This document shows positions 45,540 to 47,454 of a stretch of 64,000 nt of DNA, piece by piece. The notes beneath the pieces are model-generated. The model did no database searches, was not told the DNA's origin, and worked only from the letters and a program-made list of their open reading frames with translations. The first letter of the stretch is position 1. Every line of letters begins with the position of its first letter. The stretch is from the sequence record NC_019401.1; one strand, given 5' to 3'. The translations under genes and the position numbers were made by a program.

Positions 45540-46002
45540 AATGAACACACCTCAGCAACATACGTTGGAACAAGCAAAAGCCCTGCTGGATAGTGCAGAT
45601 CATGGTGATCCACTTCATTGGGAACTCGCAAAATATCTGTTCCGTAACATGAATTCAGTTGAATTCGCAATCAAATCTGGATGGCTTCAGAATTCATCAG
45701 ACGATGACAAAGAATTCTCTGAAAAATTTGTTTCGTTGCGTGACCAATACCAACAGTTGTTCGAAGATGAATCGGGTACTGCATCTGTACCAGAATATTG
45801 CACTGAAGTAATTCCAGATATTCTGGATTACTACGACTTTAGTACTGAAGCGGGTCAAATCATTCTCAACATGATTAAGACACATGTCGCTCAGAACTAT
45901 GCGGCTGGTATGGAAAACAATCCAGATGAGTACGCTAAACTGAATCAGGAGATTCAGGGAAAGATCGAAAAAATTGACCAAAATATGAAACCACAAAATT
46001 AA
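45529..46002 (+). CDS. hypothetical protein
   Basis: GAGGG RBS before ATG 45541. Confidence 0.7.
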   Translation: MRDKMNTPQQHTLEQAKALLDSADHGDPLHWELAKYLFRNMNSVEFAIKSGWLQNSSDDDKEFSEKFVSLRDQYQQLFEDESGTASVPEYCTEVIPDILDYYDFSTEAGQIILNMIKTHVAQNYAAGMENNPDEYAKLNQEIQGKIEKIDQNMKPQN

Positions 46003-46014
46003 TTGTGGTATAAT
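45986..46014 (+). promoter_or_regulatory. TGAAAC-N17-TATAAT promoter (RNA-gene class)
   Basis: Directly upstream of an ORF-less structured region. Confidence 0.75.
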
Positions 46015-46020
46015 CATATA

Positions 46021-46500
46021 GACAATCCTGTTTGATAGGGAGGGTTAAACCTCCCTAATGATTTGCACCCACTTCAATGAAAATGTAATTGATGGATGAG
46101 AAGTTCAAGCAGTTCGCAGAGCAAAAGAAACCCGTCAGGATTCGGCATAGTTTGTACCGACCACGGCAATGCGGCTCTATAAAGAAGTACATCTAATCGT
46201 TATCAGTACTTCCTCGATAGACATATAAGTGCAACCTTACCAAAACGATAAGGGAGAATATGCACCGATTTTGTACAATATAGATCCGTCCAAAATTTGT
46301 GAATCATATTCAAGTACTTTGTTTGATTGTATAGACAAGTATTAAGTGAGCTAAGACCTCGACCGTTGTTAGAACTGAAATAGGAAGAAACAGGACAACC
46401 CGCTTCCGTGCTGCAAAGCAATTTTCAATACAATTGCCGACGACTATCATCGTCAGTTTTCATCCTCCAGCGGGGGGATGAAAATGCCTCAACAAATCTC
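46021..46500 (+). ncRNA. candidate structured non-coding RNA (about 0.48 kb)
   Basis: RNA-class promoter; helices AATCCTG/CAGGATT, TAGGGAGG/CCTCCCTA, GAAGTAC/GTACTTC, TTTTCATCC/GGATGAAAA. Confidence 0.65.
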
Positions 46501-46653
46501 GTCAGTAATAAATGTGTTTAACGTGGTACAGTTGAATTTTAAATAAATGATTTTCTTGCGGCGAAGCGTAAGAAAATCCTTGACTTGCGACAGCAAGGCG
46601 AGTACGATACATTCATTCACACAGAATAACTACTTTTCATTTAGGGGTATTAC

Positions 46654-47454
46654 ATGGGTACTATCTATCTTGCTGCGGATCTCAGTGACGTTACTGAAGA
46701 TAATGTTTCAGACTTTTGTTTTGATAAAATTGAATGTTCTGAACTTGAGAATATTCCCAACATTGATGCTGTTCGTGCAGTTCTTGTAAAATCTAATATC
46801 TCTCGCGAGATGCAAGATCACCTGAACAGTCTTCGCCAATTAAGTAAGGAAGAATGTCTTTCTATTTTAGAACATTCTGATAGGGTATATACCTCTCGCA
46901 TTTTACAACACCAGTACGATCTCGATGTGATTTATAAGTACCTCGATAAACTGGACATTTGTTACGTAGAAACACAAGATTCTCTTGACGCTCAATTCGT
47001 TGAGAAGTACTATGACGATATGGATATGTCTGGTTTTGTCAAGTACCGTGCACAGCTTGGCGACATTGATAAGTTCATGAACATTCCAATGGTGTGGAAT
47101 TATTATGCGAAACGTGTGTTGAACTATGATACACCGATTGAAGAAGTTGAACAGTACATTCGTCGTCTGAATCCGAATGTGAACGTTGATGTAATGCACA
47201 CTGTACTTAATAAATTGTACTTAACTCCAGTTAACGCTACTACGTTAGCAGCGGCATATTCTAATCGTAATCGTTCGAGCCATTCTGTCGATACAGTTGT
47301 TAATTATTACAACCGTAATCATGGCAACTCGTATGAAAACTGGTTCGCATATGTTGCTGATGGGGAGCGTCAAAATGAAACTGCGTTGATTGATGTGTGG
47401 TTCAAAGATCATTTCATGCCTGAACTTCGCGAACTGGCTAACGTTCAAAACTAA
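46654..47454 (+). CDS. helical-repeat family protein 1
   Basis: FVEKYYDDMD repeat motif. Confidence 0.8.
   Translation: MGTIYLAADLSDVTEDNVSDFCFDKIECSELENIPNIDAVRAVLVKSNISREMQDHLNSLRQLSKEECLSILEHSDRVYTSRILQHQYDLDVIYKYLDKLDICYVETQDSLDAQFVEKYYDDMDMSGFVKYRAQLGDIDKFMNIPMVWNYYAKRVLNYDTPIEEVEQYIRRLNPNVNVDVMHTVLNKLYLTPVNATTLAAAYSNRNRSSHSVDTVVNYYNRNHGNSYENWFAYVADGERQNETALIDVWFKDHFMPELRELANVQN

Follow-up and report, generated by a model that had tools for sequence, protein, structure and literature searches.

In all likelihood, positions 46021 to ~46510 (+ strand) of the window, that is, of the whole 64,000-nucleotide stretch of NC_019401.1 (Cronobacter phage GAP32) that was analyzed, hold one of five paralogous genes of this phage for a non-coding RNA of ~490 nt. 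As shown by covariation among 68 homologs, the RNA is composed of two domains with ~20 helices and four pseudoknots. Members of the family occur only in jumbo phages like RaK2, 121Q, and GAP32, with three to five copies each, and as single copies in integrase-bearing defense islands of Enterobacterales. The function of the RNA is unproven; our leading hypothesis, which we judge more apt to fail than to hold, is that phage DNA replication starts at the element in an RNA-dependent way and that the islands exploit this.

Locus, promoter, and absence of coding potential

The element lies in a 651-nt gap (46003-46653) without a conserved reading frame, where the ORFs are all short (≤72 aa). The original prediction of a structured RNA gene of about 480 nt without a credible ORF held, by covariation as well as by a non-coding pattern of substitution. 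No 3-base periodicity was present in the substitutions between orthologs (chi-square p 0.36-0.90, five ortholog groups), and 76-95% of the indels among them were not multiples of three, most being of 1-2 nt. Short ORFs are annotated across the element in GAP32, Kaldavass, 7t3, and Hallingskeid, GenBank records other than that of GAP32 have small ORFs called on the strand opposite to the RNA, and the UE-S1 record annotates part of one copy merely as repeat_region. The spurious small-ORF annotations in several of these records need correction.

The claim that TGAAAC-N17-TATAAT stands directly upstream was also confirmed, and the motif precedes 68/68 phage copies as well as the bacterial ones. 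The promoter had further been taken for one of an RNA class, and this failed: promoters of the form TG[AG]AAC-N13-15-TGnTATAAT number 33 in GAP32, all on the + strand, and only 5/33 drive the structured RNA, so the TGAAAC type is a general phage class and not specific to RNA. It matches the "divergent RpoD-like" TGAAACG promoter of phage CBB (PMC5259590), and we infer that each copy would be transcribed from it by the host RNA polymerase. Another promoter-like site is found between the copy at 46021 (c5) and GAP32_504.

Strand, extent, and transcript

Folded as a single sequence, the element was more stable than its shuffles (z -2.7), and so was the opposite strand (z -3.8); therefore, thermodynamics alone cannot name the strand. 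A G.U test gave 202 G.U cells versus 86 A/C cells, and this excess, together with the direction of the promoter, places the RNA on the + strand. Its 5' end, ~7 nt past TATAAT, is inferred from the promoter position, and its 3' end is uncertain, being either near 46460, where a U run follows P17, or no earlier than 46505. Conservation among the GAP32 paralogs spans 46079-46524, and in relatives the RNA reaches ~700 nt. Contigs from four RNA libraries covered 46006-46605 above the flanks, in runs that had been picked by this sequence and in which paralogs pile up. Because such contigs also extend into the flanks, one of them into the upstream gene, a discrete transcript is not shown.

Conserved secondary structure

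Covariation across the 68 homologs supported the structure strongly. In the 3' domain, 93.9% of the cells were paired and 35/39 pairs had compensatory changes, and in the 5' domain the values were 89.3% and 32/43. Partners slid out of register were 26-45% paired (~40% for the 3' domain), and 0/500 shuffles reached the observed pairing. Peaks of mutual information coincided with the covarying pairs, and many unpaired nucleotides were invariant. The features are collected in Table 1.

Table 1. Features of the GAP32 element and its surroundings (positions in the window)
Feature	Position	Strand	Evidence or remark
GAP32_503	ends 46002		Gene on upstream side of gap
Promoter	45986..46014	+	TGAAAC 45986-91, 17-nt spacer, TATAAT 46009-14; extended -10 TGgTATAAT 46006-14
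Large structured RNA gene, copy c5 of five	46021..46510	+	Covariation, non-coding pattern, G.U strand test
Pseudoknot S1 (PK-C)	46028-35 (CTGTTTGA) with 46105-12 (TCAAGCAG, P4 loop)	+	8/8 pairs compensatory, 85% paired
P2, variable hairpin TAGGGAGG/CCTCCCTA	46036..46057	+	≥4 bp in 83% of 53 distinct sequences, mean z -3.3
P3	46069-71/46093-95 and 46074-78/46088-92	+	92.5% and 78.6% paired; 6/8 pairs compensatory; conserved loop GAAAATGTA
P4	46100-02/46113-15	+	Encloses S1 3' strand; 100% paired, 2/3 pairs compensatory
P5	46118-22/46174-78	+	99.6% paired
P6	46132-35/46163-66	+	96.4% paired
P7	46138-45/46157-62	+	66.7% paired; short and long forms exist
Pseudoknot PK-D	46169-71 (ATG) with 46222-24 (CAT)	+	100% paired; variants ATA/TAT, ACG/CGT, ACA/TGT, ATC/GAT
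P8, hairpin GAAGTAC/GTACTTC	46184..46212	+	7/7 pairs compensatory; in 100% of distinct sequences
P9	46226-29/46236-39	+	93% paired, 3/4 pairs compensatory
TAAGGGAG	46249-56	+	Invariant, single-stranded, 3' of P9
P10	46256-62/46305-11	+	Carries optional module hairpin P11
P11, optional module hairpin	46268-73/46291-96	+	Conserved loop TACAATATAGATCCGTC; sits in P16 in other paralogs
P12, long hairpin	46313-25/46332-43	+	In 100%, z -4.3; 10/10 pairs compensatory
Pseudoknot PK-A	46326-32 (ATTGTAT, P12 loop) with 46428-34 (ATACAAT)	+	99.7% paired, 7/7 pairs compensatory
P13, hairpin	46347-50/46358-61	+	97.8% paired
Pseudoknot PK-B	46365-69 (GTTGT) with 46395-99 (ACAAC, in P15 loop)	+	100% paired, 3/5 pairs compensatory
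Three-way junction P14/P15/P16	46376-80/46423-27; 46383-87/46403-07; 46410-12/46417-19	+	99.1%, 100%, 94.4% paired
GAP32_503A	46408..46521	+	37-aa ORF annotated in GenBank; frame lost in paralogs and orthologs; probably no gene
P17, hairpin	46439-43/46450-54	+	First CGTCAG motif 46451-56, then TTTT
P18, hairpin	46457..46484	+	Invariant GGGGGGATG at 46472-80
Conserved 3' tail yCTCAACAAAyCyCGTCAr	46485..46510	+	Second CGTCAG at 46500-05
GAP32_504	starts 46654		Gene on downstream side of gap

Paired variants of S1 include CTGAATGA/TCATTCAG and ACAACGG/CCGTTGT. The 7-nt "code" of PK-A is class-specific (ATTGTAT, TTCATGT, CTGAATT, or GTCGAAT), each with a matching partner. Judged by insert length (n=68), the hairpin module is carried by P10 in 39 copies, by P16 in 26, by both in 2, and by neither in 5. 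A T run of ≥6 follows P17 in 41/68 copies, behind an extra hairpin in the copies inspected. The motif GGGGGGATG occurs five times in the GAP32 genome, always within these elements.

Four of the nine helices of the original prediction, about half, failed as conserved pairings, and other pairings, the four pseudoknots among them, take their place. The pair TAGGGAGG/CCTCCCTA, whose true position is 46036-43/46050-57, held as the variable hairpin P2, and GAAGTAC/GTACTTC as P8. Also confirmed were TTTTCATCC/GGATGAAAA, across homologs, and GACGA/TCGTC, a hairpin in all distinct sequences that in a RaK2 copy reads GAAGA/TCTTC. The outer pairing AATCCTG/CAGGATT was only 64% paired, it left no signal in a crude complementarity test run on each sequence, and its CTG belongs to the 8-bp pseudoknot S1, which was found by inspection. 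GTGCA/TGCAC was 38% paired, and GCAATT/AATTGC, at 61%, clashes with two strongly covarying helices. CCTTA/TAAGG was 85% paired yet had no compensatory change; the partner of CCTTA is an upstream TAAG (93% paired, 3/4 pairs compensatory).

Positions T46447 and T46497 covary, being T/T in 36 copies, C/C in 32, and mixed in none. On the tree there are 5 changes per site, and the second site was concordant in 3/3 independent pairs (supported branches), a number with which a sign test cannot reach significance. A third column pairing with both positions was looked for, and none was found. The idea that ribosomes hop, as in gene 60, from one codon to its match 50 nt on was dropped because no frame is conserved. 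The likeness of the 3' tail CUCAACAAA to boxA of the rrn leader is too weak to claim.

Copies in phages

The five GAP32 paralogs, at 35.2, 98.8, 177.5, 261.5, and 340.7 kb of the genome, are diverged (~70% identical), all on the + strand, and separated by gaps of 53-84 kb whose evenness is significant (min-gap p 0.0045, CV p 0.001); the other five-copy genomes give similar values, but they are not independent of each other. That there are five paralogs, and copies in bacterial islands, lay beyond the view of the original prediction. The 68 full-length homologs come from 14 phages. Among the genomes searched whole, RaK2 has three copies, 121Q and UE-S1 have four, and twelve others have five. 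Full-length relatives are present in 62 GenBank records of jumbo phages of the RaK2/121Q/GAP32 kind, and IMG/VR added 52 further loci, which in the entries inspected lie on contigs of ~350 kb or on shorter pieces. A further 51 pattern matches in IMG/VR were at chance level and revealed no distant relatives outside the clade. Against c5, the nhmmer family profile gave E 2e-143 and the covariance model R1 gave 119.7 bits (E 7e-32) at 46312-46441.

The positions of the copies are syntenic across genera and the paralogs mostly evolve separately, which argues that each is kept in its own right. Because the five copies of XaC1 cluster together in the tree, the paralogs are not always independent. 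Copy c3 sits between minus-strand genes, where a + strand block begins, so the element is independent of its neighboring genes; for the same reason, a 5' leader of the downstream gene was rejected as a general reading. The genes downstream of the five copies have different annotated functions or none (by annotation only; the sequences were not compared), and no partner protein gene consistently adjoins the copies.

Copies in bacterial defense islands

Single complete copies with the phage-type promoter were found in integrase-bearing defense islands of Serratia, Enterobacter, Buttiauxella, and E. coli; the island of E. coli LR-29-1 lies between ffs and ybaA. These islands are small and integrative, with an integrase, a cargo of Kiwa, PDC-M45, or RmrA, and no evident replication genes of their own, and on at least two occasions they acquired the element from phages. 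Genes that read in the direction of the RNA lie after it in the RIT714 and E. coli islands and encode proteins with hydrophobic stretches (by eye, in a short alignment); when compared, the downstream proteins of the two islands were not homologous. The genes that come next in the Serratia fonticola island are oriented toward the RNA. Of 151 sampled Enterobacteriaceae genomes, only the query genome had the element, and the plasmids searched gave no match.

Relation to known RNAs

No assignment to a known RNA was obtained, be it tmRNA, RNase P, a group I/II intron, hammerhead, ROOL, GOLLD, or 6S. At the gathering score, Rfam 15 yielded only tRNAs in the window; at E≤10, the region 45900-46750 gave 4 matches of chance level (the one to tmRNA with 6.1 bits versus 47), and no match recurred among eight other copies. 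The RNA is not a tmRNA, as the absence of tmRNA ends had already suggested: ARAGORN found no tmRNA or tRNA, and five copies per genome would also be unfitting. No description was found in papers on CBB, PA5oct, fEgEco12, or UE-S1, or in two large catalogs of candidate RNAs; the supplement of PMC10690425 was outside our scope, and a fragment is possibly there. Regarding the other large RNA predicted in the window, at 38 kb, the octamer common to both had been noted as possibly due to chance, and this was confirmed (6 matches with ≤1 mismatch vs 4.55 expected); kinship was rejected, as the family covariance model does not match that RNA.

Proposed role in replication

The even spacing on one strand and the repeated capture by islands suggest that the RNA acts in cis, on DNA. 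We tentatively propose that the RNA would act at its own locus as an RNA-dependent start of phage DNA replication, the folded transcript and the conserved 3' block (hairpins P17 and G6, the optional hairpin with its U run, the repeated CGTCAr, and an A/T-rich stretch) marking or priming an origin. The mode would be akin to that of the T4 promoter-type origins and of ColE1 RNA II, with far more RNA structure. The five evenly spaced copies would fire the 359-kb genome, and infection by such a phage would amplify, and might also transduce, any island with one copy. Indirect support comes from CBB, where promoters of the TGAAACG class lie mostly in a region rich in DNA-synthesis genes (PMC5259590). 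As for the whole explanation, RNA identity and origin role taken together, we find it as apt to be right as wrong. A bolder reading, that this is a new type of origin whose pseudoknotted transcript must fold at its own locus, and that the islands stole copies of it, is conceivable.

Several observations stand against an origin. Neither transcript ends, nor an R-loop, nor a replication start has been observed, and the hairpin and U run between P17 and P18 (41/68 copies) would stop most transcripts short of the G6 hairpin. Loss, by deletion, of closely spaced direct repeats is another possible cause of the even spacing. The degree of structure, with four pseudoknots and invariant unpaired bases by the dozen, is typical of ribozymes and RNA-protein particles and, to our knowledge, is required by no origin transcript. 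GC skew was uninformative on origins, following gene direction and showing nothing at the five sites.

Alternative explanations

The main rival, which cannot be dismissed, is that the transcripts move away from their loci and act in trans during infection, either catalytically, as a ribozyme, or at the core of an RNA-protein particle, maybe self-assembling like ROOL and GOLLD. Several diverged genes would then give dosage or paralog-specific variants, and a copy in an island would be a decoy or a handle on the same phage factor. The fold is indeed of the catalytic or particle kind (four pseudoknots, a module graftable on two helices, invariant unpaired motifs), the PK-A code differs by paralog class and would allow like-with-like assembly if the pairing were intermolecular, and the related jumbo phage PA5oct makes abundant non-coding RNAs of 236-619 nt (PMC7318152). 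However, the even spacing, single orientation, and separate maintenance of the paralogs are left without a clear reason, the benefit to a defense island of expressing an unaltered phage helper RNA is unclear, and a consistently adjacent partner protein gene is lacking. Less probable is a cis-acting transcription element, conferring processive antitermination like HK022 put/EAR or protecting the downstream message, by which long + strand units or downstream island genes would be expressed only in infected cells. The copies are oriented with most genes, c3 being at the start of a + strand block, terminator-like hairpins with U runs occur inside or just before many copies, like checkpoints, and two islands (RIT714 and E. 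coli) have co-directional genes after the RNA. Against this, known antitermination RNAs measure 70-120 nt, very long transcripts are unnecessary given the 28 further promoters of this class in GAP32, a separate promoter-like site precedes GAP32_504, and the Serratia fonticola genes face the RNA.

It is hardly credible that the element is a DNA-level repeat without RNA function, such as a set of protein-binding sites or a recombination site, with its hairpins forming in DNA. The CGTCAr motif changes in concert at both of its sites, 46447 tracking 46497, as fits matched DNA sites, and one database record (UE-S1) lists part of a copy only as a repeat. Nevertheless, the + strand alone tolerates G.U pairs (202 vs 86 cells), long-range and pseudoknot pairings covary in a manner inexplicable by DNA cruciforms, and the promoter is correctly placed at every copy. 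An unrecognized protein gene, be it GAP32_503A or one of the opposite-strand small ORFs of other records, is practically ruled out: for it speak the short ORFs annotated in the four phages named above, and against it the absence of codon periodicity, the indels of mostly 1-2 nt, and frames that differ between paralogs.

Replication initiation, our preferred reading, would if true explain how phage genomes of 350 kb start to replicate and show how little an island needs in order to travel with jumbo phages; an integrase and an RNA origin would suffice, and the RNA-bearing islands would rank as the first satellites of jumbo phages of the T4-like kind. The comparative data are unusually good (hundreds of sequences, five old paralogs per genome, four covarying pseudoknots), and the family is open to test at once, since phages that carry it can be cultured on E. 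coli, Cronobacter, Serratia, Erwinia, and Klebsiella.

Comparison with known systems

Comparators for an origin are the T4 promoter-type origins ori(uvsY) and ori(34) and the ColE1 primer, RNA II. In both, a phage or plasmid promoter is followed by a transcribed region, as in our element, which would start DNA synthesis; RNA II is also of similar length (~550 nt) and requires correct folding. T4 reportedly replicates plasmids that carry one of its origins and also packages them (Kreuzer and Alberts, 1980s), behavior that would explain the island copies. In contrast to our RNA, the T4 and ColE1 transcripts have no conserved pseudoknotted architecture and the T4 origins are not homologous to each other, whereas for the jumbo-phage RNA neither an R-loop nor a DNA start has been shown. 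The islands, for their part, compare with phage satellites and integrative defense islands (P4-like, PICI), which are likewise small and integrase-bearing, with defense cargo and one helper-derived cis element each. Mobilization of the RNA-bearing islands, however, has not been shown, and no satellite is known to be tied to a jumbo T4-like phage or to possess its helper's gene for a structured RNA.

The P3-P4-P5 junction resembles a hammerhead core, with CAGAUGAG-stem-CGAA being near to CUGAUGA-stem II-GAAA, but the GAA positions vary (CGCAG, CGATG, CGTTG) and the strand order of the three helices differs, P5 pairing downstream and not upstream. A hammerhead ribozyme was rejected on account of this variable core, the wrong strand order, and the lack of an Rfam hammerhead match. 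The Pseudomonas jumbo phage PA5oct, a distant relative of the RaK2-like phages, also makes non-coding RNAs, the abundant and ORF-less ncRNA001-004 seen by RNA-Seq. Its ncRNA002 was rejected as a homolog, as there is no detectable similarity and the covariance model finds nothing in PA5oct. Like the RNA described here, ROOL and GOLLD are ~500-800 nt long, richly structured, non-coding, phage-borne, and of unknown function; unlike them, the jumbo-phage RNA has no cmscan match to either even at E≤10, is not beside tRNA genes, and occurs in 3-5 spaced copies per genome, captured by bacterial defense islands. It is distinguished by its even spacing on one strand and its repeated capture by integrase-bearing islands. 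Very few large, intricate RNAs are known from bacteria and phages (RNase P, tmRNA, group I/II introns, OLE, GOLLD, ROOL, and HEARO), and each of those found in the past opened new biology.

Genomic context, promoter, and coding potential

The element belongs to a family of promoter-driven, noncoding, multiply pseudoknotted RNA genes. The window comprises bases 294664–358663 of the genome of Cronobacter phage vB_CsaM_GAP32 (JN882285, 358,663 bp), and the RNA gene, on the + strand from 46021 to about 46510, is held in a 651-nt intergenic gap between the end of GAP32_503 (46002) and the start of GAP32_504 (46654). The original prediction had placed a TGAAAC-N17-TATAAT promoter directly upstream; this held, and an extended −10 TG is also present. 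In GAP32, promoters of the form TG[AG]AAC-N13-15-TGnTATAAT occur 33 times, always on the + strand (33/33) and never on the minus strand, and five of them drive RNA copies; transcription from this class is inferred. The strand bias of the class, exemplified by 45986–46014, is strict for phage promoters. The same class was described in phage CBB as a "divergent RpoD-like" TGAAACG promoter, found mostly in the region with DNA-synthesis genes (PMC5259590).

Positions 46540–46608, 3′ of the gene, contain a conserved hairpin (GATTTTCTTGCGGCGAAGCGTAAGAAAATC) followed by a sigma-70-like site (TTGACT-17-TACGAT) ahead of GAP32_504, and similar sequence is also found 3′ of copies c3 and c4. Elsewhere in the window, 19 tRNA genes are dispersed across ~28 kb (1512–29924).

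The substitution and indel patterns, together with the G·U count, show that the gene is noncoding and lies on the + strand. In each of five orthologue groups, variable sites fell with no preference among the three codon positions (p = 0.36–0.90), and 76–95% of the indels in orthologue groups were not multiples of three. Among the proposed pairs, 202 cells were G·U and 86 were A/C (G·U on the opposite strand), the latter count being near the level of other mismatches. The strand could not be decided by folding energy alone, because the z-score was −2.7 on the + strand and −3.8 on the − strand. None of the GenBank phage records examined annotates the element as an RNA; in several, small ORFs are called across it, frequently on the incorrect strand. 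GAP32_503A is probably an annotation artefact, as are the small ORFs that cross the element in phages Kaldavass, 7t3, and Hallingskeid, most of them called on the opposite strand.

Secondary structure

Candidate helices were taken from scanning every column pair blind, from mutual information with average-product correction, and from averaged base-pair probabilities, and were then inspected by eye on representative alignments.

Positions in the window of the promoter, the annotated ORF, and the helices (P) and pseudoknots (S1, PK) of the RNA model
Feature	Position	Remarks
Promoter	TGAAAC 45986–91, TATAAT 46009–14	17-nt spacer; extended −10 TG
GAP32_503A	46408–46521	37-aa ORF, GenBank annotation
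S1 (PK-C)	46028–35 with 46105–12	5′ strand pairs with P4 loop
P2	46036–43/50–57	
P3	46069–71/93–95 and 46074–78/88–92	
P4	46100–02/13–15	
P5	46118–22/74–78	
P6	46132–35/63–66	
P7	46138–45/57–62	
PK-D	46169–71/46222–24	
P8	46184–90/46206–12	
P9	46226–29/36–39	
P10	46256–62/46305–11	bears module hairpin P11
P12	46313–25/32–43	
PK-A	46326–32/46428–34	
P13	46347–50/58–61	
PK-B	46365–69/95–99	
P14	46376–80/46423–27	
P15	46383–87/46403–07	
P16	46410–12/17–19	
P17	46439–43/50–54	
P18	46457–68/73–84	

On a MAFFT alignment of 45 non-redundant sequences, 93.9% of the cells of the 3′ domain were paired, compared with 71.9% in shuffles (0/500 as high) and 36–45% with slid partners, and 35 of its 39 pairs showed compensatory changes. 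For the 5′ domain, the same sequences gave 89.3% (shuffles, 70.8%; slid partners, 26–41%), with compensatory changes in 32 of 43 pairs. An earlier set of 111 pairs (our own count), which still contained P1 of the original prediction and a 4-bp PK-C, had been tested on 65 distinct sequences, with 86.9% of cells paired (shuffles, 69%; slid partners, 37–42%) and 82/111 pairs compensatory. PK-A, P13, P14, P15, and P16 were also picked by RNAalifold run blind, and the variable hairpins P2, P8, P12, P13, P17, and P18 were formed in 83–100% of distinct sequences. The module hairpin, with loop TACAATATAGATCCGTC, is grafted on P10 in 39 of the 68 copies and on P16 in 26 (on both in two, on neither in five); alternative placement of a peripheral element in this way is typical for RNAs that adopt a defined three-dimensional fold.

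Four of the helices proposed originally, corresponding to P2, P8, P17, and P18, held across homologues. Four others failed: AATCCTG/CAGGATT is peculiar to the window copy, with its CTG forming part of S1; GTGCA/TGCAC is not a conserved pairing; CCTTA/TAAGG fails because CCTTA pairs with an upstream TAAG; and GCAATT/AATTGC is incompatible with P14 and PK-A. Chance accounts for the octamer in common with another RNA proposed at 38 kb.

Some features of the leader and 3′ region remain unexplained. A hairpin and U run directly follow the promoter in many copies (at least five T in the leader of 10/68) and are annotated as a terminator in GenBank for copy c1. Between P17 and P18, 41/68 copies have a run of at least six T, and a hairpin stands before it in those that were inspected. 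If these sites terminate transcription, many transcripts would lack P18 and the 3′ tail, which are conserved in all copies despite the terminator-like hairpins upstream in many. Positions 46447 (P17 loop) and 46497 (tail, 50 nt downstream) are T/T in 36 copies, C/C in 32, and mixed in none (mutual information, 1.0 bit). Each site changed five times on the tree, and the second site followed the direction of the first in 3/3 independent pairs located on supported branches, with too few events for the sign test to reach significance. A third column pairing with both was sought and none was found; a U:U/C:C tertiary pair or matched recognition sites are possible explanations. The last base of two CGTCAr motifs also changes jointly in 63/68 copies; in the single RaK2 copy for which both sites were read, each has CTTCAA.

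Distribution among phages

GAP32 has four paralogues of the window copy (c5), at 35.2, 98.8, 177.5, and 261.5 kb of the genome, all on the + strand and ~70% identical to it; all five copies have the same upstream promoter and a common conserved core of ~450–600 nt. The gaps between them (63.6, 78.7, 84.0, 79.2, and 53.1 kb) are more even than expected by chance (minimum-gap p = 0.0045); the remaining five-copy genomes gave similar values, but their ancestry is shared. Copy c3 is flanked by two minus-strand genes, where a minus-strand gene block switches to a plus-strand block. GC skew in GAP32 tracks gene direction and was uninformative on origins.

The element was found by BLASTn in 62 GenBank phage records (Mimasvirus, Eneladusvirus, Asteriusvirus, and unclassified relatives). 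Fourteen phages searched whole yielded 68 full-length copies in syntenic positions, five in each of 12 genomes and four in 121Q and UE-S1. RaK2 has three more diverged copies; in PA5oct no copy was detected, and its published ncRNA002 is unrelated. IMG/VR added 52 true members, and the contigs listed for them are ~350 kb long or are shorter pieces; a further 51 pattern matches there were chance. All five XaC1 copies form one cluster on the tree, which suggests that in this phage they evolved in concert or were duplicated anew. CBB copy c1 (genome 32406–32849) is 81% identical to c5 and falls outside the cluster of other c1 orthologues at a 78% identity cut-off, a pattern suggestive of gene conversion between paralogues.

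Bacterial copies

When single genomes representing each prokaryote species were scanned with the pattern, seven full-length bacterial members were identified (nhmmer E, 1e-96 to 1e-107), in Serratia fonticola (complete chromosome), Serratia sp. 2723, Enterobacter chinensis, Enterobacteriaceae RIT714, two Enterobacterales MAGs, and a 2.8-kb contig binned as Clostridium, probably wrongly. They retain the phage-type promoter and every helix, with one copy per genome in all five bacterial genomes searched whole. Such copies are rare, occurring in 2/5,426 complete E. coli genomes and, besides the query genome, in 0/150 sampled Enterobacteriaceae genomes; none was found on plasmids.

All three islands studied closely (3/3) were integrative and carried defence cargo. 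The RIT714 island, adjoining corC, carries a tyrosine integrase, the RNA gene, a resolvase, and Kiwa KwaA/KwaB. That of E. coli LR-29-1, between ffs and ybaA, has an integrase split by IS3, the RNA gene, PDC-M45 candidate genes, and a resolvase, and that of S. fonticola, adjoining rof and tilS, has a large serine recombinase, two ParB/RepB-like genes, and the RNA gene, with RmrA and an HNH protein further in. The LR-29-1 island is ~11 kb long, beside the SRP RNA gene, and two of its trio DUF4326, DUF488, and dual-OB match the PADLOC candidate system PDC-M45. In two islands (RIT714, L370:5312–5986; LR-29-1, L375:15259–16032), the first gene after the RNA is co-directional with it and encodes an unrelated protein with hydrophobic, membrane-like stretches (short alignment); these proteins could be infection-induced effectors. 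The genes 3′ of the RNA differ from island to island.

On the tree, the E. coli copy is nested in the phage c3 clade, beside Eneladusvirus c3 copies, and the remaining bacterial copies fall together with the five from XaC1. At least two acquisitions by islands from jumbo phages are therefore implied.

Possible function and relation to known RNAs

The function has not been shown. The reading that accounts for most features together is that the RNA may serve, where it is made, as an element that starts replication in an RNA-dependent manner, although we judge it somewhat more likely to be wrong than right. It would account for the even spacing on a single strand, the fact that old paralogues are maintained separately, the promoter class, the conserved 3′ block (G6 hairpin, repeated motifs, and A/T-rich stretch), and above all the repeated uptake of one complete copy by small islands without replication genes. 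Plasmids carrying a T4 origin are replicated and packaged by T4, a precedent for such uptake. It is weakened by how complex the fold is, by the terminator-like hairpins within the element, and by the lack of any direct replication data.

A trans-acting ribozyme or RNA–protein particle, for which such a fold would not be an objection, is possible. A cis-acting transcription element is unlikely. A repeat acting only as DNA is very improbable beside the compensatory changes and the G·U count, and a protein-coding gene is all but excluded by the substitution and indel patterns.

The RNA has no Rfam family, and no description of it was found in the literature searched. It has no detectable similarity to ROOL and GOLLD, the large ornate phage RNAs that are nonetheless its closest kinds.
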